DNA of 64,000 nt from Neoechinorhynchus agilis (lineage: Eukaryota; Animalia; Acanthocephala). The translations under genes were made by a program, and so were the position numbers. The notes under the pieces were generated by a model that worked only from the letters and a program-made list of their open reading frames with translations, did no database searches and was not told the origin of the DNA. Shown here piece by piece: positions 3,465 through 64,000 of the stretch. The stretch covers positions 2,328,797-2,392,796 of the forward strand of contig CM121342.1 in NCBI GenBank assembly GCA_051530055.1, written 5' to 3'. The first letter of the stretch is position 1; the number at the start of each line of letters is the position of its first letter.

Positions 3465-5060
3465 TGATAGGCATCAAATTGACCACTTAAACCCTTAAAA
3501 ATTAACAACCTGCGATACTTAGAAATTTCTTAGACAATAATCATTAATAAGCTTCATTTTTCAGTGATATTTCATCCAATTTACAAAGACGCATCTCTAA
3601 TTTAGGTTTTAGAGAAAGATATCAATTGTCACAAGAACCGAATATCAAAATGTTTAATGACGAATCTTAATCTCCGAAGGCACCTAAGAATCCTAAATTC
3701 TAAAAATTGACGAATGGTCGAAAAACCGAGCTATTTCCGTCGTCGTCTTTACGCAAGAACATAAAACGAAAGCTTAAAGATCGTTAAAAATTCACCGATA
3801 CGTCCAAAATGATAACCAATAGACAAAATCCGAGAATCCGGTTTACTGACCCCAATCCGAAGGACGATATTCCACATTAAGAATTGTATTTTCTTTCGAA
3901 CAGAAATCGGAAAGATCTAATGTCGGAAATCTTTGTAATCTCCAAAAAGTTGATTCTTAAATTTGATTGGTCAAATGGTTTCTTGTTATTCAGATTTGTG
4001 GATTTTGCTTGGCACTTTGGTTCCATGGCTCATTGATGGAAATTCATTAAAGTTTCTTTTCCTATGGATGGAGTATTTTGAAGGTTCGGTTTTTGTATCT
4101 AAGATCCGATTCTGAAGTGCAGAATCATGAAGGTTTGAAGTGAATTCTGAGTCCTATGTTCACCTTTTGTAAGAATCCATCGTTTTCTTCTATTTAAATT
4201 TTAAATTAATATAGAAGATAAATTAAAAAAGGGGATTCCGTTATCATCATCCAGGATAAAAAATATTTTATTTAATAGAAATATTTCGCGATTGATCAGA
4301 TCAATTTACAATGACGGACGTGGCTATGCTTCCTCTTTCGAAATATCTCAATGAAATATTTCGAATCCGCCTGGCATCTACAACTCTATCTGCCCCATGG
4401 ATTTTTTCTTAGTTTTAAGTGAGAAAATGAAAATTAAACAATTATCATACGACTAAAACACTAGTTTAATCTGTTAATAACATGATTTTTATAGCTAAAA
4501 TCTGGAATGTTTCGTAGATCCTAAATTTTACGATTTACGACATTTTTGAACCGGTCAAACATCATCATCATAAACTGAAATCCCATGCGATCCATTTTGG
4601 CAAGGCACTCAATGTATGGATCGAAGCATTTGGCTATTTCGAGAACATGTTTATCCGGTAGATGCTTTGGCGGCTTTCCTATTTTCGTATATTTTTCGTA
4701 TAGTTTATCCCTTGTTTTTAGAAGCTTAATGATTGTCTCCATCCTGATATCGTTGCAATAACATCCTTCGTTTAACTTTATCAGATTAAGAAGGTTTCCA
4801 AAAATCCCATTGAAATATCGGAGCACATCATCGCGAATTGGAACGTCCTCTACAGCCGTCGTATTTATTATACTTTGAAGGTACGAGGACGGATCTGTTG
4901 GCATTGTAGTTTTAGAATTTGTCCCTGGGATTTCCTGGTTCGAATGCTTTTTTAAGTATTCCATTTTCAGTTCCGTTTTCAAAGCATTTTGGTTTGAGGC
5001 TCGACCACAAGTGACTGAGAATGCATAGAGCAGAAAAGAAAGGAGCACGATGAAGATGAG
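3465..5060. repeat. Segmental duplicate block A (direct copy of ~26885-28455; 3' part also at ~13135-14010)
   Basis: Near-identical sequence starting at ATAGGCATCAAATTGACCAC in both places. Confidence 0.95.
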
Positions 5061-5090
5061 GTTATGTTTCTGAATTATCTCTGACCACAT
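4521..5090 (-). CDS. Orphan secreted protein, copy 1 (189 aa, intronless, signal peptide)
   Basis: Intact ORF with a hydrophobic N-terminus (LIFIVLLSFLLYAFSVTCG). Two further intact paralogs lie in the window. Confidence 0.8.
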   Translation of the reverse strand: MWSEIIQKHNLIFIVLLSFLLYAFSVTCGRASNQNALKTELKMEYLKKHSNQEIPGTNSKTTMPTDPSSYLQSIINTTAVEDVPIRDDVLRYFNGIFGNLLNLIKLNEGCYCNDIRMETIIKLLKTRDKLYEKYTKIGKPPKHLPDKHVLEIAKCFDPYIECLAKMDRMGFQFMMMMFDRFKNVVNRKI

Positions 5091-5714
5091 AAATAAAAGA
5101 GCGAATAAGTTCTTTTGACGAAAATTTTACTCAATGCTTTTCATCCCGCTAATATGATTTTCACTTTTGAGATTTCACATTTTTATTTATTCACAGTTGC
5201 CTTCATGGCTAAAAGTGTCGTTGGATTGCTAGTGCACAGTTAAAAGAACGAAATGTGGACCTAATTTGTTTTACAAGAATATTCGAATGAGGCATTTGAG
5301 CAGATCCTCTTTGGGTTTAATAAGACGGCGAGCGGAATATTTATTGATGAAATTCTTAACTTTTTTATCCACTTTTACCAATTTTTTGTGTATATTTCTA
5401 CGATAAAATTCTTTAAAACTTCTTTAGCTCACAGACATTTATTGTAAGATTTAACAAAAATATTTAGAATCGTATTTTTGATATTTCTTTAATTTAATAT
5501 TATTGGAATAAATTGTTGCTGGGCCGATACATTGTAAAAAGTTCATTAAACTTTAATAGTTTTTTTAATTTTTTAATTATTTTTTCTATCATGACTTATG
5601 AATACGCATTTCGATTGACGAACTTCTATGATTTGGCAATTTTTCAGTGTCAATTCGAATGAAATCTAGAGACGGATAAAGAAATCCTCAGTCAAATTTA
5701 ATCTCTTGTTCAAG

Positions 5715-8552
5715 ATGACTCATTGTGCTCGCTGCACTTTTGCAGTAATTGGAGGTGGCATCGCGGGTGTATCATGCTGTGAAACCGTAAGACCACCATT
5801 GAAGTAATATGTAATGATTGTTCAATTAGCTCGCATTATTGGGCAATAATGACAAATCAATCGTTTTATTAACAGCGGCTCCAGCAATTAAAGAGCCGAT
5901 TCGTATTCAGAGGGTTTCATCCTTTTTATTCAGGTAACGAAACTGAATTTAGTTTCTGTTTAGGTCACTAAGATGCTGGACTCGTTTTTCGTCGAAGAGA
6001 AACCCTGTGAATCTATTGAAAATCGATTTGATTGCGTTACAGTAAAAAACGCTTTGGTCACTCATTTAGACTTTGACTTACATGTCGGTTTTTCTTTTAT
6101 TTTGAGTAAGAAGCGAAGATCTTTTGTCTAGATGATCCTTTGTCACGACGGAACTCGAATACAATATGAAAAGTTGTGTATTTGTGCAGGCGGTCGACCG
6201 AAGGTAAATGTAAGTTCAAGGATTGATTTTGAATTATTTTAAATACCTTAGTTGATCACATCGGATGATCGCATTCGCGATTGTGTTATGACAATTAGGG
6301 ATTCAGAAACGGCTGATCGATTATCCAGGCGGCTAAAAGATGCTAGAAGGATAGTTATTGTCGGAAATGGCGGATTGGCTACAGAACTTGCGTTTGTTTC
6401 AATTTTATTTTGCTCGTTTTTCATCATTTATGTTCAGTTATGAAATTAAAGGATGTGACGTGATTTGGGTCGTTAGACACGATTATATCAATAATGTTTT
6501 TTTCGATCCTGCCGCTGCTAAATTTCTATTGAGTAGCTTAGAAAATGACAATGAAGAAGAGGCCGATACTAATGTCCCTGAGCGTGCTTACACTTTTGAA
6601 AGTTTGACGACCACAATAACTGCGTTTGTCTGATTTCCCTTATTAGGAATCGAAAAGACTGATGCTAGCGATTGGGATGATGTACCTGCTGGAGCTCTTG
6701 GCCCTGAGTGGATGACCTCATTTGATTTGGTTGGAAAGGTTAGCATTTTAAAATAAGATTTAAAAAATAACTTAATATTGTACCCAGTCAAATGTCGATG
6801 ATGTCTTTGAATTATTAGAAAGGTATTTTCATGACAAAAACCGCGGTCATTTTCCAAAAATTGTTTCGTTTTGTTTATGAGCGGTGCCCAAAAATCTCAC
6901 AGCGACGTACTTTCTCCGTGGCATCTTCTATTTTGGTATTTTTTCATGCTCAACTTTTTTCAAGATTTTTAAACGTAATCTCTGTTTTTGAATAGGCATT
7001 TTAGTCAATTTATGTAACCTCGTTTTGATATTTCGTTAGTTTTAATAATGGTATCACATTACGAGCATTTTTCTCGACTTTGACCTCAAAGATGATTTTT
7101 CCACGTCGTTAGGGAATGAAATCAATCAAGGTCATATACAAATCCGAAATTGAGGACATTTTAAAGAAAGATGAGGAAATAATTGATCCAACGGACCAAG
7201 ATACGAGCTTTCGATGGTATGTCAAATTGACCGGTGGTCAAGTGTACGGATGCGATGTTGTGATAAGTGCGATTGGCGTCGAGCCAAACACAATCCTGTA
7301 TCAAAATGCAGCTCCACGTGGGAAGGTTTCGATTTTAAATCATTAAAGGATGAACTCACATTCAGTTCTTTTAGTTACTGACATCCGAGGACGGTGGTAT
7401 TGTTGTTGACAAAGAAATGATGTCAAGTATTCCGGATGTTTACGCCGCTGGAGATGTTTGCTCAGTTAATTGGGGAGAAAGGGAAGATTGGTTCCAAGTA
7501 AGTGAGCAATAATCATGTCGACGTTAATTAAGAAAACTTGGAAAAATGAAACTGTTTATTATATTTGATGCCTCTCTTTATTATGACTGCTGCTCTGGAT
7601 CACTCAGCTGCCTTCATTGTGTAACGGTCGAAAGGATGGATGTAACGTCTCTCCCCGTTGCCGAGCCAAACTTATGTTTTGTAGGATTTAATGTCCTCGG
7701 ATCGTCAGTGATTCGTCTCAGTCTCTTGAGCAGATCCTGCGCCGCGGTACCAAACTACCAGAGTGTTTCGACGATAAAGGGTTGGAAAAATTGGTTACTT
7801 TGATCTATAGAGACTTCCTTTGGGTGTAAATTGAAATGTTATCAGAATGTTTTGAACTACATTGATAAAGGCGAAATGTTTGTCGTAAATTTGCATCATA
7901 TTGTTCGTATTTAGAGCAATCATTCTCATATTTATATATTCTGTAAATTTGTTTAAAAATCCATTAAGGAGATCATGCTTTAATGAATTTCTTTTAAAAG
8001 TACAACAGTGGTATTACCGATGGTGCTACTTCTGTATCCGTACTATTAATTTTTTATATCCTCAGATGCGAACATGGACTCAGGCTAGACAAATGGGCCA
8101 TTATGCAGCCAAGTGTATGTTCGCTCATCGAAACGGCGATGTTGGCCGTCAGCCACTTGAACTTTGTTTCGAAATATTCGAACATTGCACCCATTTCCTA
8201 GGACAGAAGGTTTGTAAATAGAATTTCACTTTAAATCATGCTTGAGCTACGGCTTTTAGGTCGTCTTTCTTGGGCGGTATAACGGTCAAGGCTTGGATAA
8301 ATATGAACTTTTATATAGAATGACACCAGGTATTGAACTCTTTTGTTCATTTGAACTCGTGTTTATTGCTGCGAAGATCATGAGTTTATTAAGTTGGTTT
8401 TAAACGAAGGTTTGGTCAGAGGAGCGGTCATAATTGGCGACACAGAACTTGCTGAGACTATAGAGAACCTAATTCTTGGACGATTAAATGTTTCGAACCT
8501 CGGGGAAAACCTCTTAGATCCTGAAATTGATATTGCTGAATATTTTGATTAA
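5715..8552 (+). CDS. PYROXD1: Pyridine nucleotide-disulfide oxidoreductase domain protein 1 (multi-exon)
   Basis: FAVIGGGIAGVSC FAD motif, IVIVGNGGLATEL, VYAAGDVC, MRTWTQARQMG and a C-terminus LLDPEIDIAEYFD*. GT-AG introns, including long ones at ~6739-7112 and 7498-8065. Confidence 0.93.
7588..7785 (-). mobile_element. CRE 3'-end fragment inside a PYROXD1 intron
   Basis: Reverse-complement match to 12200-12410 and direct match to 26160-26290. It lies within intron 7498-8065. Confidence 0.85.
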
Positions 8553-14240: not shown

Positions 14241-14285
14241 TAAACTGATGATGAAGAACCTGACAAGGTTCGAAACGTGTTTTTT
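14241..14285 (+). ncRNA. Degenerate minimal hammerhead-like motif
   Basis: CTGATGA-TGAA-GAACC(tgacaa)GGTTC-GAAA-CGTG. Stem II is perfect, but there is an extra TGA and a non-permissive GUG triplet. Confidence 0.55.
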
Positions 14286-14723
14286 AAATTATTTACCAGG
14301 TGAAGGCTTTTAAAAAGTAATCCTAGCTCTTGTAGCTTATTTATTTGCACATGCTTATTGTTTTATTTGTCAATAGTTACCTATCGCTTCATTCTTTTGT
14401 CATCTATAAGCACAGTAGTTAGAGGCTGAAGTAAAGTAGAAGCTGAGTTTGAGTGATCTCTTAGCTCCTCAATCCTTCATTTCCCTTAGATTACCTTAAA
14501 GAACCAATAAGACATTTCCTTTTATTCTTTTCGCTCATTTTTCTAAAAAGGTCACGTATTTTATTATAAAGTTCTCCCTGTAATTCAATTGTTTTCCTAT
14601 GAAATTTTTGTAGCTTTAGGGCTAAAGCGACGTATTTTATAAATCGGTAAAATTATGTTTTTTTCACAAACAATCTACATACACAAAATTATACGTTAAA
14701 TAGGGCCTTTTCAACCACACAAA

Positions 14724-19335: not shown

Positions 19336-19784
19336 CGGAATAATTAAATGTTATTATTTGGGTTGCTTGTCAGGAGGTATCGCGTTAAAGACAATATTTC
19401 GACTAATTGAATCAGAGTCATTTTATCAATTCTATCTAAAAATTCATACAAAATTTGTCACATCGCACACCAAATGATTTTTTCGTTATGATTCGGAAAC
19501 CAGGAATCGTCGACTCCGTAGGCGAAGGCATGTCTCAAAAATTAAAGTACTAAATTCAGAAATGTTTAAGAATTCGTCTTTAACAAAAGTTACTATTTGT
19601 CGCCAAAAATTTCTTGTTTTAAAATTGGTTATGGTGATAGCATTGTCGTATAGTTTTGAAACAACTAAACGATAAAAAACGATAGCAACTAAAATTTGTT
19701 AAAATGTCGATATGTGAGGTACCGGGGAATGTGATTGGAATTATCGTTTAGGTCTACACCCGCAGTAAATGATTATTTATTAAA

Positions 19785-19818
19785 AACGTTTCGAACCTCG
19801 TCGGATTCATCATAATTT
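19785..19818 (-). ncRNA. Antisense hammerhead-like copy with a mutated core
   Basis: Reverse complement reads ATTATGAT-GAATC(cgacga)GGTTC-GAAA-CGTT. Confidence 0.5.
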
Positions 19819-19849
19819 TGTTTTTTGGAATTATTGTTTTATTACTAAC

Positions 19850-19898
19850 AAACAAACTGATGATGAGCCCGTCGAGGTTCGAAACGTCTTTAATAAAA
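19850..19898 (+). ncRNA. Minimal type I hammerhead ribozyme motif of the Penelope-associated, dimer-type kind
   Basis: CTGATGA (19857-63), T, GAGCC/GGTTC stem II, GAAA (19881-84), palindromic ACGT stem III, predicted GUC cleavage after 19888. Weak AAA/TTT stem I. Confidence 0.75.
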
Positions 19899-20854
19899 TC
19901 TATTGTTTTCAGCAAACTACAATCAAGAATTAATTTAAAGCTCGTTGGCACTTTTAAAACCGAGCTTTTGTATCTAAAGTTCTCAAATCAAACCAAAATC
20001 TCAAGCCTATTTGTTTTTATTGTTTCTATGCGCAAAATATAGTGTTAAATCTACAACTTTAATGGCGCATTTTCTTTTCTACAAGAGGCAAAATTGTAGA
20101 GCATAAAATTATTTCCATTTTTTGCATTCTTGTACAGGTAATTTTTTTATGTTTAACTTATGAAAATATGCTTTTTTCTAATCATTCTGAAATATAAAAA
20201 TGCACATTTTAATATTCACTCTTTGGCAGCATCATTAATAAAACAGTGTTGACCGCATCTAAAATCATTTTTTACAAAAATTGAGGATGGTTGAACAATC
20301 CGCTGACTCGAAGTGGCTTAAACAAGTTAATATTCGTTTAATTTTTGACGATTTCTAGAAGTTACGGGCTAATCAGGACATCCCATCATCGCTTAAATCC
20401 GAATTCATGTTTCGGTTGTTCAAAAGGTAAAAAAGGAATGAGGGTGAATGGTAGACTAAAGCAACCGTTACCGAGATTGCTAAAAGAATATTTTACATTG
20501 TGGTTAAAGCTCCTTTCTATTGTAATTCTATGTTTTTTAACATTGTTAAGGATCATAGAAAGTTGAAGTACCCTACTAAAGATTTCCCTATTGATAATAT
20601 AACTACGTTTTTATTATTTTGTTGTAAGAATAATTGCATTTATGAATTATCTTTAGACTCAGATTTTTTAAGCAATACATTTACATTAAAAGTTCACTTT
20701 TCCATTTGTATCTTTTATGGAAGTGAATGACAAATAAGAGTTGACAAGCGATTCCACGAAGAAATTGTAAACTCACTGCTGATTCACTTGTGTTGCAGAC
20801 TGCAGAAGTGCCTATAGCAACTTCTTTGAAGAAAAATCGCGCAGAGTCGTTTAA

Positions 20855-22312
20855 ATGGTACATTTTGTTGACGATGATAATACTCAATACTCGTTTACGC
20901 CGGTGATCGTATTTACATTTCTGGGATTTATACTTCAGCGATATGCTACGAGTACACCCGTGATCACTTTCGATATCTCTCAATATCTTTCTCAAGGTCT
21001 TACGATTTTCGGTGCCGTTTTATTAATGGCTAATGTGATTGTGATTCCCTTGTATTACATTGCTCAAGCCAAAGCAATGTTGCGAGTGCCAAAATGGATT
21101 AAAATATTAATGGGAGCTGGATTGTTAGCCGGATATTTGGCTGCTTCGTCCTATTTATGTTATCCTGGTAATACATCGACGGGATCAGCGCTGATTGCAG
21201 TTCGTTTGGGCGGATGTGTCATTTGTATGTTGATAACGTCCAAGTATATATCATTTTATAAGTTCTGTTTTGAAAGCGATAAAGTACCAGTGATTGGTTT
21301 TAAACATTTTATACAAGAGACCGTCATTATGGTATAGTTATATGTTTTACTGATATTTTAGAGACTTATTTACGAACTTAGTAAGTTCCCTCATGCTCGC
21401 TTTATTTGACAGAAAAGCTGTTTTACCATCATGCGTTGAAATTTTGCTTCGTATATTTTAATTTTTCACTTCCTATATTCCTTTTTTTTTATTTTCGACG
21501 TTCTCTTTAGCGCATTGTGCCAAGAACATTTTAGACGTTTTTGGAGTCGAAAATAAACCAAATAACGACCACACGGTGGGGCTAATTTTTATTTAGAATC
21601 GATTTCCTTGACGATCCTTTGTGTTATGTTCACAATGTATGATCCATGGCTGTATTTCAATCCACCTAAACGAATGTTTTACAAAGTGCGCCCCTTGATG
21701 GTATTCCGATGCTTTAGTGAACTTTTGTTCCTCATTGCGTTCAATACTATTCTAGTTGGTGACTGGATAATGCCAATTTTGACAGATCATTTCATTAAAT
21801 TTTCTAAAAACGATATTTTGCCGCTGTTAATCGTTACATGCCGTATTTCCCTCTTCGCTCCAACGTTTCATATTTCCCTATTCTATCTGTCCTTTCAACC
21901 GATGCTTAATCTAATGGCCGAATTCACTGGACTTCTTGAACGTGAATTCTATTACGATTGGTGGAATTACGACGATCTAATGCATTATTGGCATAGATGG
22001 AATCAACCAGTCCATAGGTATTTAAAGAAGATGATATACATTCCGATGGTAAAGAAGCGCGGGTATCACGTATTGATTGCAACCGAAGCGGTTTTCCTCA
22101 CTTCGGGTATCATCCACGAAGCACCCTTCGCTGTCTGTTTCGTAGAACCAACTTACGGATTTGTGGGATTTCTCGCGATTAGCCCGTTCCTTGCCATGGT
22201 GGCCAATAAGATTAAAAGCTGGAATCGGCCGTTTATGAAACTGCTTTTCCGGCTTGGCATGTGTTGGGGTGTAGCCGGAACATTCATCCACTACGACATG
22301 CTTTATTTTTAA
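20855..22312 (+). CDS. MBOAT acyltransferase, DGAT1/SOAT-like, paralog 1 (multi-exon, approximate model)
   Basis: REFYYDWWN, WHRWNQPVHRYL and AVFLTSGIIHE (catalytic His). The multi-TM first exon is homologous to paralog 2. Confidence 0.85.
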
Positions 22313-23545: not shown

Positions 23546-25331
23546 ATGCTCAAAATAGGTTCTGAAGACGGCACCCGGCACCTCTTCACGCCGATTATAC
23601 TGTACACTGTCGTTGGATTCTTGATAAGGCGATATTCCATAAGTGTCACTTATACAGATTTTGATCCTCTAAAGTATTCTTCAAATGCTGCAAAGATCAT
23701 TGTACCAGTACTCACATCAGCGAATGTAATGATAACACTTGTGTATTTTATAGTACAATCGAAGATCACAAGAAAATCGACGAAACGTTTGAGAGTTCTC
23801 TTATCATTGCTGGTAATGAGCATCCATATTGTCATTTGTGCCTATATATGCAATCCACTCAATCGTTACACAGGTTCTATATCATTACCGATCCGAATGA
23901 TTGGATATACCATGTTCAATTTTGCAGCACTCAAAACGTTTACTTTTTGCATTTTTTGCTTTGGATTTGCAGGAGAAAAAGACGTACAAATCGGTTATCA
24001 GCACTTTATTTGGGAGGTCGTCACAGGATCACCTTATATGTTTAGTATGCTTATAGATACAAATATCGAATTTCATTATGTTAAAGATCTTTGTTATACA
24101 TTTGGGAAATCTACTCGTCTAACAGTAGTTTTTCTTAATGGACATTGAAAAGAATAGCAATATAATTCGATTTATTTCTGGTATGTTTAAATTTTATTAG
24201 ATTTTGAGCATGCTCAAAATTCGCAACTTGCATTTATTTTCAAAAAATAATCATGGGAACTGAGTAAAAATACAAATGGATTATTTTAGTAATTTTCTTG
24301 GATTAAACTTTATATTTTCATATGTCAAAGCTTCGGTTTTACTTTCGCTCAATTTTGAATAATGAGAATTAGTGCCATTTCGTGTAGAATGGTGTTTTTA
24401 AATTTATCTTTAGTTTAAATATGTCACTTTTGTCTCTTCCTGAGTTTATTCTGTGCGAGCGAAAATGAAAAATTATATGATTCGTTGACAATTATAAGAA
24501 GCCCGCGAAGTCCAAGTTTAGCAAGTACTTTTCGGCGCATCGACGATAATGTCTTCTTTTGAAAATTTTAAACTTAAAATTAACTCCTATATACAAATAA
24601 AAGGTAAGTTTCCCTCAAAGTGACGGCTTTATTTTATGTTGACAATGTACAATCCTTGGTTATCGTTCCGGCCCTCGAAACGTCTTTTCTATCGAATCCG
24701 TCCACTGATGGTAGCTCGCTGTACAATCGAACTATTGCTGAGCCTTGCATTCAATACAATAATGATTGCCGATTGGTTGATGCCGATCATATACAACCAC
24801 TTCCACATTTACTCCAAATCGAACTATCTTCGATTAATACCACTCATATTTCAAGTTTGCTTATTTGGGGCAATGTCGCATATAACATTATTTTTCTTAT
24901 GTTTCCAGCCGATGCTAAATCTAATGGCTGAACTTTCCGGTGAACTCAATCGTGAATTTTACTACGACTGGTGGAACTGCACTGATTTGACAAGCTATTG
25001 GAACAAATGGAATCAACCTGTTCATCGATTTCTAAAATATAATGTATATGTGCCATCGGCGCATATATTCAAGTTTAAGAAATTCACATGTGAAACGATT
25101 GTGTTTGTAGTTTCGGGTTTAATGCACGATCTAGCTTTTCTTGTATGTTGCAATCAATTGCCGTTTGTATTTATTCCAGCTTTTGGTACTAATCCGATCC
25201 AGTCGAGAGTAGTGGACGAGTTCAGCAAGCATTATCCAAATGCTTGCACACTCATTGGAAGGTTCACAATTGGATTGACTGCATCAGTTGGCTTCGTCGG
25301 ATACAGTCTCTACTTTGTCAAAGATTATTGA
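23546..25331 (+). CDS. MBOAT acyltransferase, DGAT1/SOAT-like, paralog 2 (multi-exon, approximate model)
   Basis: REFYYDWWN, WNKWNQPVHRFL and VFVVSGLMHD. Confidence 0.85.
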
Positions 25332-33345: not shown

Positions 33346-35043
33346 CTATTTTTCTGCGGTATCATCGTCGTCAACTTTTGTGTAAACTGGCTCGCTGATT
33401 GGTCTGCGCGCTTGCTCTTTTTCGGACTCTGGACATTGAGTACCGGGAGCTGAATTTCGGACGGTATCAGTGGAAGATTGCTTGTTGTTCAATAAATTAG
33501 TAAAGAATGTGGCTAAAGTATGACGGGAAGGAGCGTTAGTACTTGGCTGTACCAATTCCGGGTTTTCCTTTCTTTTCTTTGACTGTCCGCTAGATTTTTG
33601 GGACTTTTGTTGCGGAGGTTGAGGAGACGGAGTCTGCTTCCGTTCTTCGGATATTGATTTAAAGTTCAGTCTGTTTGTCTGAGCATGTAAACGACGGAGA
33701 AATCGTTGTTCACTTTCGGACTGAATTCTGGTTGAAGTAGATCGATTTTGCCATGAGGGTACACTAGAAAGTTCCGTTGGTTTTTCTATCACCGATTCAA
33801 AATCTACTTCGTCCGGTCCGAACTTGGTCATCGTTTGTTTCAACATACAAAGTTTCTCTTCATCGTCCCAACCAATTGGACTAAAAGAAGTGAATGTACA
33901 AAAATCGAGGCGGTTTCGAAATTACATAAAGATGTTATCTTGATCCACAACGTTTTCTTTAAATTCATAGGAAAATCCACATGACACATGAGCCATGTAT
34001 CTCAAAATACGACTCATCGATTGAATATTCTTTGTCGATGTATAAGCAAGCCCACTTTTATCTATTTAGGCATTTTAGGAGCAATTGTATCGATTAAACA
34101 TACACATACGCTTAAGACAAATTTTTCTGAGATTATATTGAATAAAGTCGAAATGCTCGTTTGTATATCCATATTCTTTTCTTAGATATTCACTGTGGTC
34201 AGTCTTAAATATAATACAGGTTTCGGGAATTAAATGTCACAATATTTGTCTCGCTCGGCTTTAACGGCTTAAACTGCGAAGCGCACATAAATTTAATGGA
34301 AAGAGAGAGAAAAGGTAATTTGGATTTAATGAGTATTTAGAAAATAAAAGCTATAAACCTGGATTCTATCAAAAATGACGATATGTGAGGTACCGGGGAA
34401 TGTGATTGGAGTTATTGTTTAGGTCTACACTAGCGGACCTCTTAAGGGGTTCATCAGTTTGTTAGATTCCAGTATCAAAAACGAATAATTTTTCTAGGAA
34501 ATTTTGAAAATGCTTCCAGAGGTCTCGATTAAAAAGATGCCAAAAATTTACCTTTGTAATGATCACAAGTCGATTTGTATTCTCCATCATTTCCTGTCCG
34601 ACTTTCAACCATCGACACAAACTGTTTACTAATAGCCATGGTTTGTCTAAAGAAACAACAAATACCATAAAAGTTCCATCAAGATCAATAGAATCGATTG
34701 CGTCCTTTAAAAGAAGCTGACATTGCCCTTGTCCGTCCATCACCCATAAACTTAAACTGACCACCTCTTCGCCGTCATCATCTTTCACTTCAATATAATG
34801 AAACTCCAGACCGAATTGTGGAACGTTGCTTCTATTTTCTGGTTCTTGCCATCCATTGATGAGCGTAGATCGTCCCGAATCTTCATCACCGAACATAATC
34901 ACAGTGGACGATTTTTTGTCTTTCCTAGTGGAATGTTTAACATTGTCTAAGATTGAGGTCCAAATATTTGTTTCATTAGGTTCGGATGTACTGTCAAAAG
35001 ATTCTTCATGGCCAAGAACAGTTTTGAGCTGAGATGAAGACAT
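33346..35043 (-). CDS. DYNC1LI: Cytoplasmic dynein 1 light intermediate chain (multi-exon)
   Basis: NIWTSILD, MFGDEDSGRSTL, GLEFHY, EHFDFIQYNLR, PIGWDDEEK and LATFFTNLL. Confidence 0.9.
34372..34470 (-). repeat. Internally deleted copy of the hammerhead-associated repeat, in a probable DYNC1LI intron (~34274-34551)
   Basis: Reverse complement reads CTAACAAACTGATGAACCCC..GTGTAGACCTAAACAATAACTCCAATCACATTCCCCGGTACCTCACATATCG, matching 19707-19760 and 19846-19863. Confidence 0.8.
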
Positions 35044-46069: not shown

Positions 46070-49000
46070 GTCTAAGTTTATGGCTGTGTAAAAGGTATGC
46101 AACATGGATGGTAAGAATACCTTTTCTTCTCCTGACTTACAACTTAACGTCTTTAAACTAAGTATTTTATTTTCATAGGTAAGATACTTTTGTACGCCGA
46201 TTAACTCTCGAATAAATTTACAGAAAGTGCACTTATAAAATTTGCGGAATTTCTTGCTATCAATCGCAAATAAGGTTTTTTTTAAATATTTATCGTTGAG
46301 TCTTACAGTTATAAGCGCCACTAAAAGATCTTCTTATTCTAGCGAAACTTGCTTAAATTTGAGATGATTTTGTGTAAATTAATAAATAACACGGAATAAA
46401 TTTTTGAAACTTAAATGCCACATTAATATCAAACAATGAAAGTTAATTTTAGATTTCATCAAATCAAAGCAATCTTAAATAAAAAATCATAATACTGAAA
46501 ATTAATAATTGTTTTGTTTTATTGGAAAGAGTAATACCTTTAGTCTGATTAAATAGAATTTCTGTCTATATGTCAAAGTGGAAATCTTGCATAAATGTTA
46601 ATTTCTGTTAAATTCTCAGTTCTCTCAAGATGATCGAGATAAAAAGGAGATATGAAGTATGAATATTTCTTTCAAGCTTCCGGTCGTCATTTTAGCATTA
46701 CTCTTAATAATACAAAAATTCACGTTGATAATCGAATTTATGGTTGACCATTTCATTTCTAATAAAAATCAAGATGGCAAAATACACAACCAAGCAAGAA
46801 CAGATTTTCTCAAAAATGAGCATAAATTCTCCCAAATCTTTTATCTTTTTATCAGGCTAACTTTGGAAATAATTTTTTAAATAACTCGGAACATAGATGC
46901 GAGTATCAGACTAACATTTTATTTATCTTCCTCAAAGGAAACGAATCTGTTTAATTAAAGAAAAATTAACCGAAGACGACGTACTGCATAAATTTTTTTT
47001 ATGGATTAATGCAAGAGAGCATGGCCTACCGATCTCTTGTTGTGCGAATCAATAATTAGGCGATAGTAAAAGAAATTACCACAATAATCCTTACAATTCG
47101 TTTTATAGCGTAAAAATGTTCAAGAAAGCTTTTAGTGTACTAAACGGTGACACTTTTTTGCACCATCGGCGCTGAATACACTAGCGACAAACATTAAAAG
47201 CTAACAGCAGATATATTTTTTCAAAAATTTAAATGGCATTGTGCGATTTTAGTTTTGGAATTCATATGTTTGATTATTTGTATTAAAACGCAATTTTCAC
47301 TAAATGGGAAAATCTACGTACAAAATGCTCGTTCAATTTAAGAAGGTCCTCAATTATGCTTTAATCGTTAAAAAATGTTTCGAAAATTTGCCTACAAACC
47401 TTTGATATTACAAGATTGGTAAATATGGATACTTTTATTGGACTTCACTTTTTTTATACGTAGGAAACAGCGTAATTTCTTTAAATTCGAAACAAACGTG
47501 CATAGTATTCCATAAGTAAAAAATGTTAATTTTTAATCTCATTTTGTAAAGCTGAAAAGATTTAAAGGTTAATGTATTAACGAAACTCCATTTTTGGTAC
47601 ATGACGTTTATTCCGAAGCAATCTTTAACCCTTAAGACTCGAACGATTTAATAAACCAAGATTTTGCCGACAAACTTTATAAAATTTATCGGCGGCTATC
47701 ACAAGTTCGGCATTTTCAATACATTCTCATTGGTTGAAAAGTCAACAAATCTCAGAAGCCTCTGCGAATAGAAGAGTTTTTATAATAGAGACATGCTTTT
47801 CATTAATGCCGCTTCTTGCGAAAACCTCGATGCTAGGATAATTTCCATCGACTGACGAGACTTTGTTCAGTTCATCAACGGGAGGGCGGAAAATCATCAG
47901 AGGTATTTCATTCGTCTTCTTGCGACGTGCAAAGGTTCATTAAAAGAGCAATAGAATGTTTCCTTTCATTACTACAGACGAAAAACATCATCTTTTTCAT
48001 TATATACATAAAACCCGGCGGCACATTCTGCTAAACATTTATCTCTTTAGGGCAGGAGACACAAAACGGGAAGTTCGCACATGTTAAAGTATCGAACATT
48101 AGAGGATTATTTGGTTAGAATCGATTTTTAGAATTGATTATTAATCCACTTTTAGGTCGCTACCTTTAATCGCAAAAAGAAAAAGGAACGAAAAAAGAAA
48201 ACAGACGATACGGCTCCAATTTGTAAACTTGTCAGTGCCATTAAGAAACATGTATGAGTCTTCTCAAACTTTATAAGATACAAAAAAGATTGAAAATTTT
48301 CAATATTAAAAGGTATTGAAGACAATTGAACAATGTGTAAATAAAGATATCCAGAACAATGTTCAATATATTCAGAGTCCTATTCCATGACTGTTGAGCA
48401 CTGATCGCAATCGATTTAAAATTGGTATAAATTTTGTTGGTTCATAAACGAGGTTATATATTCAATAAAATTCAACGAAGTTCTATGTTTCAGATATTTA
48501 TTTATCACAAATAGAAGCGGATAATGTTGTCAAAATCGTTTTATTGAAATCGATTTTCGCTTTATATTCTTCGTATTATCAAAACGTCTTAGTAATCCCT
48601 AAAGTAAATAAAATCGCAATTTATTTTCTTCGTTGCTTTATAGTCTCGACTAAAATGAAAATTAATTTTTTCAAAGTGATTTTGAAAATTCGTGAACTTT
48701 AAAAAATAGTTAGCTTCCTCAAAGTTGGGCAAATCGTCTTGTCAAAGCTGAGTACTTAAATCTGTGAACTAGATTTTGGACTATTTATTGTTATGAATCT
48801 ATAAACGCCCATGGCAACCAATAATTTTTACTTCGTTGCTTACACCTTTTTCGTTGATATTCGTAGAATGAATCTTGCAAAATGGATAGCATTTCTGCTT
48901 GTTTCTATGGCTCTTTTTGTTGCTTACGTTTTATTTCTTCTTTCAATGGCCCTATACTGTAAGAAACAAAAGTTAAATAACGATATTTCCCAAGACGAAC

Positions 49001-49897
49001 AATCGAGTGAAGAAACGAACTGAGAATGAAAATTTCCATTAAGTTTCATCTCTTTGATTGATGAATTTATTGCCGAGAATGAACGTGAGAAGCAATTACT
49101 TAAATCCGTATAAAAAAGTAAAATCCAATTTCAAATAAACGCGATGTCGAATAGTCTTGTAAAATCTTTTCCTATAAAACAGAAACGACCTAATTTTTTC
49201 AGTAGGTATCAAATCAATTCGTTAGATGTAAATTGCTTTATAGATGGAATAGAAGAGCGTCGTTAATTTGCTTGATTATTTTTTTGCGAATATAGCTTTC
49301 ATTGGCATCTTTTAAAAAAATTTCAACGTTTTCAGCTTAGAGAACAATTGAAGTTTTTTGATCCGATGCTAAGTAGTGCTTTTAAAACAATAAATATAAT
49401 TTCACAATCTTGATGGACTTATAATAATAACACGCTTATTTCTTAATCGAAAAAGTAATAGGACCAATGTACTTTTGGGTCTTTATCAACACTCGATTTC
49501 TGATAGGTTAAATCAATGTTGATTATGGAGTGGATTACGGGTTCGGTTGGGTGAGAATTGGTGATTATTTCCGTGAGGTTGGCTCATTTCGGTTGATGGT
49601 ATGGAAAAATGTGGGGGGGGGGCGGAGGTTGGAGAGGATGAAATTAATTGGGTTTAGGATTGTTTTGCTGATGTGAAAAGGGAACGACTTTAGAATTACT
49701 GTTTAAAGGCACTGATGGTTCCTTCGCCGATGAAAAAGTGACGAATTATTCGTCGTTTCCCGTTGATTAACGGACAAGTTCTGCCTTCTACATTAAATTG
49801 AGATCTCCTGAAAGATGATCTCGTTTTAATAGAAATTGAAAGTCTAAATCAAAGTTAGTTGCGTTAAAGCATTCTATTATATTCCTCGTCGCTGGCA
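46070..49897. repeat. Left arm of a large inverted repeat (at least 3.83 kb)
   Basis: Reverse complement of 60173-64000. Coordinate sum is 110070 at both checked ends, with only scattered SNPs and 1-bp indels seen. Confidence 0.97.
48811..49023 (+). CDS. Small single-pass membrane protein in the left IR arm
   Basis: 70 aa with TM WIAFLLVSMALFVAYVLFLLSMALYC followed by KKQK and an acidic tail. The protein is identical in both arms. Confidence 0.45.
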   Translation: MATNNFYFVAYTFFVDIRRMNLAKWIAFLLVSMALFVAYVLFLLSMALYCKKQKLNNDISQDEQSSEETN

Positions 49898-52939: not shown

Positions 52940-53095
52940 TTTATTTCAAAAACGATCTCTAGTTTTGAATTATTGGGTTCATCATCAGTTTGTTGTTCGC
53001 AGAACGTCTTTAATAAATAATCATTCACTGTTTGTGAAGACTTTTGTAAACAATAATTCCAATCATATACCCCGGTACCTCACATACCGACGATC
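52940..53095. repeat. Decayed copy of the hammerhead-associated repeat, with the same back-to-back layout as 19.7-19.9 kb
   Basis: GGGTTCATCATCAGTTTGTT (antisense core), then AACGTCTTTAATAAATAATCATT..CAATAATTCCAATCA..CCCCGGTACCTCACATA. Confidence 0.75.
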
Positions 53096-54270
53096 TCGAT
53101 TTTATTTATCCATCGTGACCAATAGACCTAAATCCTTTGCGCTACCTAATTTTTAAACATTTAATTGGAAATTCCATGGAAGTATAGTGTAGATCGTAAG
53201 TGAAGGTAATTAGTTTTAATTCTAATACTTACATTTACTAGTCTCGGCGTTCTTGATTTTCTTGATTAACAATCGTCACATTCTCTTTTTCGTTAATTTT
53301 CTCCAGGCTAATAACTACATCCGCCATTACTTTATTGTACATTTTTTAGTCATTAGCATTTTAAAAAGTCGCTAATAAAGGAATACTGCGAGTTACTCAC
53401 ACATTTCGGATAAAATTGTCAAAAAACTCTCAATTTTATCGCATTTTTTATTCATTCCATATCTCAAAAGTCAACAATTTGAATTCTTAAATTCCTCTTC
53501 AAACTTAAATACTAGTGTCAAAGCAAGTGTTAATTTTTTGAAGATTGAAATGTTCATGTTTTTTATGGCAAAAAATTGAAAGAATTTATTAAGCCTTTCA
53601 AATTTTCCGCCATATAAAAACAAGTGGTAATCTCACGGCTATTGTACAAGTCGCGAACGCACAATCGCTCTAAGATTTTTGAAGTCCCTTTTTATATCTC
53701 CTAATAATTAAACATCAAAAACGATGAAGGTTACTGTCGAAAATATGCCATTCTAAAAAATTATACAATATTCTTTTAAAGCATACTGCGTTCTAGCAAA
53801 TATTTTCCGGGAGTGAAAATTTAAATTTCGTCAATACGGATAATTTTATGATCTTAAATGAAAATTAAGCTGATTTCGCTTCGAAAGGTCGGCAAATTGG
53901 ATTTTGACATATGTAAATCAAAACAGTTAGTGTTTATTAACTCTTTTCTACACTCTCTGAAGCTCTAGGATAATATTTCACTTTAACCTGCTCTTATTGA
54001 ACCTAAAATGAGAACGATCAAGTAAAAAGTGTAGTCAGTAACGTAGATTTTTTTAAATAAGTTTTTAATTTGCATGTTTTTCATGATGATTTCTTTGGGC
54101 GGGTTCCGCAGCAATCATCACTCATCCACAAGGTCATTTCTCAAATTAAATCTTATTTATCCTCGATAGGAAATCCTTCGGGAACCTATTTGATTTTGAT
54201 TTATTGGAAATATTTCGCGAGGTAAACCTTAACTCATCTAAGAGTATCAATCGCTGAACAACATATAACC

Positions 54271-56289: not shown

Positions 56290-57360
56290 GCATCATTATC
56301 CGTCGATACCGTCTTGGGAGATCGTTAAAATCCGCAAAATTGTCCCGTCTACGGCCCTCCTCAATCTCCGTTTGAGATGGTGGCGGTGGCGCCTGATAAC
56401 GTCTTACGCGGGTAATTGTTATTCTTAGGTTTTAAAAGTAAAGAATAACGATTCAAAATGTATACATTTACCTTTGTCTGATTGTTCTTTGTCGTGGATA
56501 AGGGATCTCAGCTTCAATTTGAAGATAAATAGCAACCACTGCTGCCAATGCAGCGAACGATGACACAGAAAGGCTTACTGCAAGCGAGAAACTGCGGATT
56601 GAGATCCGTCTTTCCGTGTAAATAAACACCGGCAGTAACGTAATTTGAGGAAATACTAAACGATGAATACTTTTTGAAGAAAAGAAAAATCGAACCTGAT
56701 AATGTTATAAAGATGAGTGATAATTCAGTGGCCACCCTCATTAGACTCTTTGATCGGTTTGCGTTGTAGTAATTTCGAGAAAATAATACGCTGGCTATTG
56801 CGACTCCAATGATTGGTTTATCTGTACGATAAAGATTTACGCGTCTAATTGAAATTAAATTACATTACAGTCAAATGTTCGAAATGATTTTGGAGGATCT
56901 GAGTAGATGGTTATTGATATAAAAATAATAATCACGGCCAATGCGGCTATCAAATATTTTAACCAATTATTCAGTGCCTGAGTCTGCATTTTCGTAATGT
57001 TTCTCACTAGTTTCTTATTTTATGTTTTTGAAGTAAAAATCTGAGGTATAGCGAAGAAACAGAATAAGGGGGTTCCGTATTGTTACGCCCAGATTTTGCA
57101 AACACATAAAAAATAGCTGCATTTTTATTGGTTGAATTTTGTGCTCGCGCGTGTGTAAAACCGGCGAAGATAGAAAAGGCACTAAAATTATCTTGAAACG
57201 GACCAATTAGAGCGAAGAGGAGTAAAAACCAAATGGAAAAAATTGAAAATAAAACGACTCTTAAAAAAATAATCATGTCATTCGAAAATATTAAATAACT
57301 TTCCAATTCGCCGCAGTATAAGATATTTCTTGAGCGCAGTAAAGTATGAAAGACCTTCAT
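56290..57360 (-). CDS. Possible multi-exon membrane protein, unresolved
   Basis: Hydrophobic frames (FLRVVLFSIFSIWFLLLFALIG; SFSLAVSLSVSSFAALAAVVAIYL) and exon-like segments with GT-AG ends. No family recognised. Confidence 0.3.
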
Positions 57361-60172: not shown

Positions 60173-63100
60173 TGCCAGCGACGAGGAATATAATAGAATG
60201 CTTTAACGCAACTAACTTTGATTTAGACTTTCAATTTCTATTAAAACGAGATCATCTTTCAGGAGATCTCAATTTAATGTAGAAGGCAGAACTTGTCCGT
60301 TAATCAACGGGAAACGACGAATAATTCGTCACTTTTTCATCGGCGAAGGAACCATCAGTGCCTTTAAACAGTAATTCTAAAGTCGTTCCCTTTTCACATC
60401 AGCAAAACAATCCTAAACCCAATTAATTTCATCCTCTCCAACCTCCGCCCCCCCCCACATTTTTCCATACCATCAACCGAAATGAGCCAACCTCACGGAA
60501 ATAATCACCAATTCTCACCCAACCGAACCCGTAATCCACTCCATAATCAACATTGATTTAACCTATCAGAAATCGAGTGTTGATAAAGACCCAAAAGTAC
60601 ATTGGTCCTATTACTTTTTCGATTAAGAAATAAGCGTGTTATTATTATAAGTCCATCAAGATTGTGATATTATATTTATTGTTTTAAAAGCACTACTTAG
60701 CATCGGATCAAAAAACTTCAATTGTTCTCTAAGCTGAAAACGTTGAAATTTTTTTAAAAGATGCCAATGAAAGCTATATTCGCAAAAAAATAATCAAGCA
60801 AATTAACGACGCTCTTCTATTCCATCTATAAAGCAATTTACATCTAACGAATTGATTTGATACCTACTGAAAAAATTAGGTCGTTTCTGTTTTATAGGAA
60901 AAGATTTTACAAGACTATTCGACATCGCGTTTATTTGAAATTGGATTTTACTTTTTTATACGGATTTAAGTAATTGCTTCTCACGTTCATTCTCGGCAAT
61001 AAATTCATCAATCAAAGAGATGAAACTTAATAGAAATTTTCATTCTCAGTTCGTTTCTTCACTCGATTGTTCGTCTTGGGAAATATCGTTATTTAACTTT
61101 TGTTTCTTACAGTATAGGGCCATTGAAAGAAGAAATAAAACGTAAGCAACAAAAAGAGCCATAGAAACAAGCAGAAATGCTATCCATTTTGCAAGATTCA
61201 TTCTACGAATATCAACGAAAAAGGTGTAAGCAACGAAGTAAAAATTATTGGTTGCCATGGGCGTTTATAGATTCATAACAATAAATAGTCCAAAATCTAG
61301 TTCACAGATTTAAGTACTCAGCTTTGACAAGACGATTTGCCCAACTTTGAGGAAGCTAACTATTTTTTAAAGTTCACGAATTTTCAAAATCACTTTGAAA
61401 AAATTAATTTTCATTTTAGTCGAGACTATAAAGCAACGAAGAAAATAAATTGCGATTTTATTTACTTTAGGGATTACTAAGACGTTTTGATAATACGAAG
61501 AATATAAAGCGAAAATCGATTTCAATAAAACGATTTTGACAACATTATCCGCTTCTATTTGTGATAAATAAATATCTGAAACATAGAACTTCGTTGAATT
61601 TTATTGAATATTTAACCTCGTTTATGAACCAACAAAATTTATACCAATTTTAAATCGATTGCGATCAGTGCTCAACAGTCATGGAATAGGACTCTGAATA
61701 TATTGAACATTGTTCTGGATATCTTTATTTACACATTGTTCAATTGTCTTCAATACCTTTTAATATTGAAAATTTTCAATCTTTTTTGTATCTTATAAAG
61801 TTTGAGAAGACTCATACATGTTTCTTAATGGCACTGACAAGTTTACAAATTGGAGCCGTATCGTCTGTTTTCTTTTTTCGTTCCTTTTTCTTTTTGCGAT
61901 TAAAGGTAGCGACCTAAAAGTGGATTAATAATCAATTCTAAAAATCGATTCTAACCAAATAATCCTCTAATGTTCGATACTTTAACATGTGCGAACTTCC
62001 CGTTTTGTGTCTCCTACCCTAAAGAGATAAATGTTTAGCAGAATGTGCCGCCGGGTTTTATGTATATAATGAAAAAGATGATGTTTTTCGTCTGTAGTAA
62101 TGAAAGGAAACATTCTATTGCTCTTTTAATGAACCTTTGCACGTCGCAAGAAGACGAATGAAATACCTCTGATGATTTTCCGCCCTCCCGTTGATGAACT
62201 GAACAAAGTCTCGTCAGTCGATGGAAATTATCCTAGCATCGAGGTTTTCGCAAGAAGCGGCATTAATGAAAAGCATGTCTCTATTATAAAAACTCTTCTA
62301 TTCGCAGAGGCTTCTGAGATTTGTTGACTTTTCAACCAATGAGAATGTATTGAAAATGCCGAACTTGTGATAGCCGCCGATAAATTTTATAAAGTTTGTC
62401 GGCAAAATCTTGGTTTATTAAATCGTTCGAGTCTTAAGGGTTAAAGATTGCTTCGGAATAAACGTCATGTACCAAAAATGGAGTTTCGTTAATACATTAA
62501 CCTTTAAATCTTTTCAGCTTTACAAAATGAGATTAAAAATTAACATTTTTTACTTATGGAATACTATGCACGTTTGTTTCGAATTTAAAGAAATTACGCT
62601 GTTTCCTACGTATAAAAAAAGTGAAGTCCAATAAAAGTATCCATATTTACCAATCTTGTAATATCAAAGGTTTGTAGGCAAATTTTCGAAACATTTTTTA
62701 ACGATTAAAGCATAATTGAGGACCTTCTTAAATTGAACGAGCATTTTGTACGTAGATTTTCCCATTTAGTGAAAATTGCGTTTTAATACAAATAATCAAA
62801 CATATGAATTCCAAAACTAAAATCGCACAATGCCATTTAAATTTTTGAAAAAATATATCTGCTGTTAGCTTTTAATGTTTGTCGCTAGTGTATTCAGCGC
62901 CGATGGTGCAAAAAAGTGTCACCGTTTAGTACACTAAAAGCTTTCTTGAACATTTTTACGCTATAAAACGAATTGTAAGGATTATTGTGGTAATTTCTTT
63001 TACTATCGCCTAATTATTGATTCGCACAACAAGAGATCGGTAGGCCATGCTCTCTTGCATTAATCCATAAAAAAAATTTATGCAGTACGTCGTCTTCGGT

Positions 63101-64000
63101 TAATTTTTCTTTAATTAAACAGATTCGTTTCCTTTGAGGAAGATAAATAAAATGTTAGTCTGATACTCGCATCTATGTTCCGAGTTATTTAAAAAATTAT
63201 TTCCAAAGTTAGCCTGATAAAAAGATAAAAGATTTGGGAGAATTTATGCTCATTTTTGAGAAAATCTGTTCTTGCTTGGTTGTGTATTTTGCCATCTTGA
63301 TTTTTATTAGAAATGAAATGGTCAACCATAAATTCGATTATCAACGTGAATTTTTGTATTATTAAGAGTAATGCTAAAATGACGACCGGAAGCTTGAAAG
63401 AAATATTCATACTTCATATCTCCTTTTTATCTCGATCATCTTGAGAGAACTGAGAATTTAACAGAAATTAACATTTATGCAAGATTTCCACTTTGACATA
63501 TAGACAGAAATTCTATTTAATCAGACTAAAGGTATTACTCTTTCCAATAAAACAAAACAATTATTAATTTTCAGTATTATGATTTTTTATTTAAGATTGC
63601 TTTGATTTGATGAAATCTAAAATTAACTTTCATTGTTTGATATTAATGTGGCATTTAAGTTTCAAAAATTTATTCCGTGTTATTTATTAATTTACACAAA
63701 ATCATCTCAAATTTAAGCAAGTTTCGCTAGAATAAGAAGATCTTTTATTGGCGCTTATAACTGTAAGACTCAACGATAAATATTTAAAAAAAAACCTTAT
63801 TTGCGATTGATAGCAAGAAATTCCGCAAATTTTATAAGTGCACTTTCTGTAAATTTATTCGAGAGTTAATCGGCGTACAAAAGTATCTTACCTATGAAAA
63901 TAAAATACTTAGTTTAAAGACGTTAAGTTGTAAGTCAGGAGAAGAAAAGGTATTCTTACCATCCATGTTGCATACCTTTTACACAGCCATAAACTTAGAC
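60173..64000. repeat. Right arm of the large inverted repeat, running off the window end
   Basis: Reverse complement of 46070-49897. Confidence 0.97.
61046..61258 (-). CDS. Small single-pass membrane protein in the right IR arm
   Basis: Same protein sequence as 48811-49023. Confidence 0.45.
   Translation of the reverse strand: MATNNFYFVAYTFFVDIRRMNLAKWIAFLLVSMALFVAYVLFLLSMALYCKKQKLNNDISQDEQSSEETN

Follow-up and report, generated by a model that had tools for sequence, protein, structure and literature searches.

Short hammerhead-bearing repeats of Neoechinorhynchus agilis and their probable origin from a Penelope-like retroelement family

What kind of element leaves two short copies of a hammerhead-bearing repeat back to back in an acanthocephalan genome? 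We addressed this question in a 64,000-nucleotide (nt) stretch of Neoechinorhynchus agilis DNA (GenBank assembly GCA_051530055.1, contig CM121342.1, positions 2,328,797 to 2,392,796), hereafter the window, in which an inverted pair of such repeats lies at 19703-19897. Probably the pair dates from an old insertion by a Penelope-like retroelement (PLE) family and consists of two end-pieces, now decayed, that face each other head-to-head. Each unit would then be the part of a terminal repeat that carries a minimal hammerhead and runs through the start of an open reading frame (ORF) to the site at which the reverse transcriptase (RT) starts copying. An earlier note on this DNA had taken the repeats for a retrozyme-like family, possibly with circular RNA intermediates; the analysis below partly supports it, in that it was right about the ribozyme type and the Penelope connection and over-reached on the retrozyme-like circles.

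Results

An intact minimal hammerhead in one arm of an inverted pair

The locus is made up of two arms on opposite strands, with the following parts.

19840-19897, plus strand: arm A as a whole (short leader, hammerhead and 9 nt past the cut site), delimited by the inverted-repeat match
19857-19888, plus strand: sequence-intact minimal type I hammerhead of arm A, the only strict-descriptor match in the window
19857-19863, plus strand: CUGAUGA of arm A, followed by a bulged U at 19864
19865-19869 with 19876-19880, plus strand: helix II of arm A
19881-19884, plus strand: GAAA of arm A, overlapping the palindromic ACGU at 19884-19887; the predicted cut follows C19888
19785-19816, minus strand: mutated hammerhead of arm B (C3>A and G5>U, giving AUUAUGA..., and GUU at the cut site)
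19703-19784, minus strand: post-cleavage tail of arm B, ~82 nt, reaching the common family 3' end (...CGACATT)
19776-19897, either strand if transcribed: hairpin of both arms, from its fold energy

Direct reading of the arm A motif on the plus strand gave CUGAUGA-U-GAGCC-CGUCGA-GGUUC-GAAAC-GUC, in which all conserved core positions are present (C3-A9, G12-A14, A15.1/U16.1 and a residue other than G at H17). Helix II has 5 bp, with U19864 unpaired between A9 and position 10.1 and with G19865 pairing to C19880 (the G10.1-C11.1 pair), and helix I consists of just three A-U pairs (AAA/UUU) next to the core. There is no helix III hairpin; A15.1-C15.2-G16.2-U16.1 forms a self-complementary ACGU instead, so that helix III is possible only between two copies.

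We searched both strands with a strict descriptor. It asked for CUGANGA, then at most one bulged nucleotide, a helix II of 4 bp or more with a G-C closing pair, GAAA, complementary 15.2/16.2 and a U followed by a residue other than G. The segment 19857-19888 was its sole match in 64 kb, with 0 matches in 500 dinucleotide shuffles, and a looser pattern (CTGATGA..CGAAAC) matched twice in the window against 0.07 expected. The intact core reported in the earlier note was thus borne out by direct reading and by the descriptor. The model search that it had proposed succeeded in part, our custom descriptor finding the motif but the Rfam hammerhead models giving no match either in the whole window at gathering thresholds or in 19600-20000 at E-values up to 10. 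This miss is expected, because the Rfam models require a helix III hairpin.

Would arm A cleave itself? As a monomer, its active fold (-2.8 kcal/mol) costs ~6 kcal/mol relative to the minimum-energy fold (-9.2 kcal/mol), which pairs GAUG with CGUC. In an active master element, self-cleavage after GUC would be predicted only in a dimer, through ACGU pairing, or with the help of the element's protein. At the locus, arm A is a relic and almost certainly inert; there is no partner on its own strand, and pairing with arm B locks it in a hairpin. A UACUAAC sequence, the classic branch-point box, lies at 19841-19847, 10 nt upstream of its CUGAUGA, and may be a chance occurrence in AT-rich DNA. The Penelope element of Drosophila virilis has an intron whose end coincides with the 5' edge of helix I.

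The inverted repeat itself joins 19776-19833 to 19840-19897 with 83% complementarity around a 6-nt centre, and the 134-nt hairpin stretch folds at -55.7 kcal/mol (z = -11). By this folding, the intact hammerhead would be expected to become part of a duplex in any transcript containing arm A. The palindrome of arm B is longer, reaching AAACGUUU, and an AC-rich hairpin (19708-19724, CGGUA-CCUCACA-UAUCG) stands just before the 3' end of the arm. The antisense mutated partner and the tail described in the earlier note are therefore real, the hammerhead occupying 19785-19816 and its tail running down to 19703. Arm A, for its part, is shorter at its outer end than other copies: read depth drops to flank level after 19898, and loose read ends past this position run on as the family tail. 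The locus sequence holds no poly(A), terminal inverted repeats or long terminal repeat (LTR) features. A miniature inverted-repeat transposable element (MITE) or fold-back DNA transposon was rejected, the outer termini not being inverted repeats of each other and the arms being unequal.

A multi-copy family with an intact ancestral core

We compared 19560-20040 at 80% likeness with one whole-genome shotgun run (raw reads) and with three RNA-library contig sets, the latter being assembled contigs only, which carry no read ends or direction. Genomic depth was ~45 in the flank and ~11,800 in the tail (19713-19746), i.e., ~260-fold the flank; it was ~3,500-6,700 over the arm B hammerhead region, ~4,000-4,550 over arm A and ~800 at the centre (19815-19848), with sharp boundaries at 19701-19703 and 19897-19898. 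The depth seen is roughly compatible with the published N. agilis genome size of 46.2 Mb. Most reads resemble the locus at 80-95%. These results bear out the view of a multi-copy repeat built on a Penelope-type minimal hammerhead with a palindromic stem III, the unit being ~130-145 nt long.

The majority letters of the reads repair arm B. At 19816 they have G for T (82%) and at 19814 C for A (72%), which together rebuild CUGAUGA; G for A at 19785 (80%) yields GUC, and the same change at 19805 (65%) yields GAACC. Arm A carries just two minority letters, at 19867 (helix II, a wobble) and 19872 (loop II). Because the read-majority letters restore the core in both arms, the ancestral element carried the perfect motif CUGAUGA-U-GAACC-CGACGA-GGUUC-GAAAC-GUC. 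Since each arm has drifted ~8% from the majority, the intactness of arm A looks like luck rather than local selection.

Among the variants listed, five (19853, 19862, 19870, 19873 and 19881) each occur in ~15-20% of reads and include G8>A and G12>U (~17%), which suggests a linked subfamily with a dead core. Covariation of U3 with A8 is known in hammerheads. A further variant, 19876 G>A, is carried by 24% of reads and breaks a helix II pair, with no visible compensating change.

It had been remarked that the helix II 5' strands vary (GAGCC, GAAUC, GAACC) and yet all pair with GGUUC. The pairing holds, but the strands differ by single transitions giving G-U wobbles, and among the three or four copies in the window the helix II changes are one-sided wobbles only. 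This variation is weak evidence for selection on the fold, because four of the five possible transitions in the 5' strand stay pairable; neutral decay from GAACC would give the same.

Shared ends and characteristic junctions

Two 3' ends 33 nt apart are common in the family, one at 19702/19703 and an alternative one, used in many copies, at 19735/19736. Heterogeneous AT-rich flanks begin at 19701 in 1,297 reads. The two ends also meet on opposite strands, in a tail-to-tail inverted joint (19702/19735) supported by 1,149 reads and by contigs from every one of the three RNA sets. For Penelope elements, such a tail-to-tail arrangement is described as the rarer one. In ~85 reads an antisense tail end is followed, ~14 nt on, by a sense hammerhead (19736 to 19851).

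Tandem joints were frequent. In ~1,460 reads the sequence passes from 19790 back to 19703/19702 (88-89 nt) via a conserved linker of 37-41 nt, and 4,248 more loose ends at 19703 carry the same linker with an agreement of 0.85. The tandem period is 125-129 nt; CUGAUGA is missing from the linker, which meets the following unit within the hammerhead's 3' half. The window itself contains no tandem of this 125-129-nt type. The linker contains GTAAGT...TTTCAG, resembling a splice donor and a splice acceptor end placed back to back.

A start codon inside the ribozyme and an open frame behind it

In arm A, A9, the bulged U and G10.1 form an AUG (A19863-U19864-G19865), and the predicted cut at C19888 lies 26 nt from A19863. 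Counted in the same way from A19807 in arm B, the family 3' end at 19703 falls at +105, where units end in ...CATT against AT-rich flanks. With majority letters and a form 2 nt shorter (48% of reads at 19763), the frame is open from the AUG to the unit end and yields the distal peptide of two other copies in the window, C and D (..NNNSNHI(P/S)RYLTYR..). In AT-rich DNA, a frame that stays open for 35 codons is no more than suggestive. The genomic copies alone show a start codon inside the ribozyme, a predicted cut at +26 and 3' ends nested at about +72, +105 and +135. Scans of metagenome and viral contig collections with exact DNA patterns returned 0 hits.

Other copies and their surroundings in the window

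Three further copies, one of them with an inverted fragment attached, were found in the window.

14245-14385, plus strand: copy E, an old diverged unit with a 3-nt insertion after the core, GUG at the cut site and a diverged tail
34374-34470, minus strand: copy C, with CUGAUGA kept and the hammerhead 3' half and proximal tail deleted
52996-53118, plus strand: copy D, beginning within the hammerhead 3' half (..UUCGCAGAACGUC), with a full tail and an extension of ~25-30 nt
52975-52994, minus strand: inverted fragment with leader and CUGAUGAUGAACC, abutting copy D head-to-head

All are real homologues, confirming the related pieces that the earlier note had placed at 14245, 34372-34470 and 52940-53095, with limits now set at 14245-14385, 34374-34470 and 52975-53118. 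Arm B and copies C, D and E each lack the full set of core positions individually. Copy E is inactive because of its 3-nt insertion and the G at its cut position; its frame from the AUG stops after 21 codons, and its tail runs ~25-30 nt past the usual 3' end. Copy D is open in the same reading frame as the majority sequence. Beyond the usual 3' end, copies D (53092-53118) and E (14360-14385) have ~25 nt in common, 19/24 being identical, consistent with a third nested end and with a parent element continuing past +105.

The distal tail of copy C is 95% like that of arm B. This copy lies in an intron of a dynein light intermediate chain (DLIC) gene, ~80 nt inside it and downstream of an AAAG|GTAAAT donor, in the gene's orientation, so that the insertion in introns proposed earlier holds for this one copy. 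The paralogous amplicons at 1200, 14133 and 28592 offered no empty site with which copy E could be cleanly compared, the homology ending upstream of the copy. Two weak BLAST matches (8483-8502 and 56586-56638) proved on inspection not to be copies.

Several features lie around these copies. Copy D sits in the 10.3-kb spacer of a 100% identical inverted repeat of ~3.8 kb (46070-49897 versus 60173-64000), which is either very recent or an assembly effect. Just downstream of the inverted pair are two tandem paralogues of the membrane-bound O-acyltransferase (MBOAT) family on the plus strand (20855-22312 and 23546-25331). The left flank at 19602-19618, otherwise unique, shows five linked variants in about one quarter of the genomic reads, which indicates a diverged second copy or a heterozygous haplotype. 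Elsewhere, the window holds a frameshifted gypsy-like RT/RNase H fragment (51-892; motifs FGLFEF..MPF and YTDHH), a LINE-like RT fragment on the minus strand (1888-2139) and ~30 tandem copies of an 18-nt unit (2366-2923; TGGATGACGGATCCGGxx) that possibly code for a 6-residue repeat.

Discussion

Origin of the inverted pair

We favour a PLE origin because the motif traits, the positions resembling those of PAc (the Poseidon-clade PLE of Anolis carolinensis, compared below), the combined signature of head-to-head arms, tandems and tails, the open frame, and the lack of poly(A), terminal inverted repeats and LTRs all point the same way. The PLE transcript, beginning a few nt upstream of the hammerhead, would be bound by the element's protein. 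Judging from the anatomy of the copies and from the PAc work, the units would be made by the PLE reverse transcriptase/endonuclease. Copying would start internally near +105 or at neighbouring sites and would run to the 5' end of the RNA or stop early, giving units of ~130-145 nt; alternatively, the units may be extreme 5' truncations. The inverted arm would arise by snap-back (self-primed) synthesis and the tandems by insertion into the element's own repeat, and both arms would have decayed afterwards by ~8% each.

Several observations weigh against this origin. About 70% of the genomic tail ends enter the tandem linker rather than unique flanks. Most copies part from the locus 7-12 nt upstream of CUGAUGA, where the RNA contigs are heterogeneous as well; a small independent element with a 5' end of its own would show this divergence too. 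The outer end of arm A, at ~+31 to +36 from the AUG, is not a canonical end, and the best target-site duplication (TAAAAT, 19700-19705 and 19894-19899) is ambiguous, as it overlaps family sequence in AT-rich DNA. No PLE RT or GIY-YIG gene is linked to any copy among the window ORFs of at least 150 aa, which comprise the two MBOAT paralogues, DLIC, unknowns and the gypsy-like RT/RNase H fragment noted above. When the open frame of copy D served as protein query, a word-indexed search found 0 candidates, and exhaustive phmmer gave 0 hits against 1.84 billion representatives.

Could the units instead sustain themselves? A non-autonomous retrozyme would be transcribed as a tandem, cleaved as a dimer, circularised as monomers and reverse-transcribed in trans by a PLE. 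The tandem junctions in ~1,460 genomic reads and the fairly sharp 5' boundary common to many copies speak for it, as does a 2026 preprint deriving animal retrozymes from PLE terminal repeats. Family copies also occur in the RNA-library contigs (92-174 contigs per run, at listed single-contig depths from a few to 113 against 0-2.6 for the flank); these contigs are long records with a copy embedded in them, and one joint-bearing contig reaches a depth of 322. In run X10, however, the summed RNA contig depth of the repeat is ~300-fold that of the flank, close to the DNA ratio of ~260-fold, so that there is no clear overexpression. Moreover, the 37-41-nt linker of the tandem form lacks CUGAUGA, which means that its units cannot self-cleave, and the hammerhead is minimal, without helix III or loop-loop contacts, and has no tandem in the window. 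Nor is the unit RNA better paired than shuffled sequence (arm B, z = +1.95; composites, -0.7 to +1.1, linear or circular). The retrozyme-like family of the earlier note receives only partial support from these data, and we regard a self-propagating retrozyme as unlikely here. A bolder variant, to which we give rather little credence, is that the 130-145-nt units form a self-sustaining 'mini-Penelope' lineage: a retrozyme on a dimer-only minimal hammerhead that overlaps a vestigial start codon, is transcribed from a 5' end of its own and is cut, circularised and copied in trans, the hammerhead-less 125-129-nt tandems being its satellite offshoot. If true, a parasite with a genome of 46 Mb would harbour a living link between the terminal repeats of PLEs and the retrozymes of animals.

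Two further explanations dispense with the ribozyme altogether. The first takes the inverted pair for a hairpin RNA gene, a small-RNA or microRNA-like precursor with an incidental hammerhead match; the strong fold of the 134-nt stretch, sub-threshold Rfam matches to plant microRNA precursor models, and the fact that PLE inverted structures in Adineta vaga are small-RNA targets (PMC3846280), would agree with this. The Rfam matches are far under the gathering scores (e.g., 44 vs 117 bits), concern plant families and are all caused by the hairpin, itself a side effect of how the insertion was made. Both arms belong to a ~260-copy repeat, and RNA depth in the flank is only 0-2.6. We therefore consider a hairpin gene highly improbable. 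Hardest of all to accept is a chance hammerhead-like string in an unrelated repeat of no ribozyme ancestry. The Rfam miss, the active fold lying above the minimum-energy fold and a helix I of merely AAA/UUU would suit it, but the descriptor found 0 matches in 500 shuffles, hundreds of genomic copies agree, by majority letter, on an intact core at every position in both arms, and all four extra traits specific to PLE hammerheads are present. A decayed PLE insertion product thus stays the probable origin of the pair.

Comparison with known systems

Animal non-LTR retrozymes consist of tandem units of 170-400 nt with canonical type I hammerheads and highly self-paired circular RNAs (PMC7229834), and a preprint (10.64898/2026.07.22.740005) derives them from PLE terminal repeats. 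Like them, the family described here is small, non-coding and low in GC, has a type I hammerhead, occurs in tandem forms and has a proposed ancestry in PLE terminal repeats. It differs in unit length (~130-145 nt), in not being self-paired and in having a tandem form without the catalytic box. Retrozyme hammerheads also possess a helix III hairpin and loop contacts, whereas the hammerhead here is minimal.

Rotifers are the sister group of acanthocephalans. PLEs are abundant in Acanthocephala (PMC8557442). Insertions of PLEs are 5'-truncated, often form partial tandems, often carry an inverted 5'-truncated copy head-to-head, and have a tail of 30-40 bp at only one end (PMC8557442, PMC3846280). 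In the rotifer Adineta vaga, the palindromes at inverted junctions were attributed to self-priming (PMC3846280). In N. agilis we likewise see arms placed head-to-head about a near-palindromic junction, only one of them tailed, as well as partial tandems and solo terminal repeats. Unlike those of rotifer and other PLEs, the arms here are very short (58 nt in common), and the shorter one lacks ~75-85 nt rather than 30-40.

Minimal hammerheads were defined in PLE terminal repeats by Cervera and de la Pena in 2014 (PMC4209133). The four traits that emerged there outside the search descriptor include consensus families within a genome, a conserved G10.1-C11.1 pair and a palindromic 15.2-16.2. Helices I were short, opposite-strand pairs lay 100-700 bp apart, most copies were solitary and 'probably related to truncated PLEs', and cleavage in vitro was poor even as dimers (PMC4209133). 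The N. agilis motif has the same CUGAUGA and GAAA core, an unpaired nucleotide between A9 and G10.1, the G10.1-C11.1 pair, the palindromic 15.2-16.2 and a short helix I, in copies that are scattered, mostly solitary or in opposite-strand pairs, and heterogeneous within the genome. Its helix II has 5 bp and a 6-nt loop, compared with 6-8 bp in most published families; its helix I has only three A-U pairs; and, unlike in the published cases, no PLE gene is linked to it. Elements of this kind have been known since 2014 and are ordinary for such genomes. We found no published description of an acanthocephalan hammerhead. The present family is an acanthocephalan addition to the catalogue of Penelope-type minimal hammerheads, and represents no new kind of element or ribozyme.

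The closest parallel in layout is PAc. There, the start codon comes after C3 and G8, helix II marks the beginning of the ORF, and the ribozyme cuts 26 bp past the start codon; an AC-rich stem-loop 111-118 bp into the ORF is where reverse transcription begins, a tail of 30-40 bp separates two start sites, and targets are AT-rich with ATT cleavage (PMC11167929). The PAc ribozyme depends on the protein of the element; it can be dispensed with for insertion in vitro, and RNA-seq shows no read ends left by it (PMC11167929). Here, too, the start codon is made of A9, a bulged U and G10.1, the predicted cut is 26 nt on, ATT ends meet AT-rich targets, and the insertion 3' end falls at an AC-rich stem-loop (~105-118 nt into the ORF over both systems), a second end being 30-40 nt distant (33 nt in this family). 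The main end of the family, at +105, stops short of the +111-118 of PAc, and a third, longer end is seen in copies D and E. This likeness is one of positional layout read from genomic copies, with no sequence similarity expected, whereas the PAc layout was worked out biochemically. Within these bounds, the agreement suggests that internal initiation of reverse transcription is an old and general property of PLEs.

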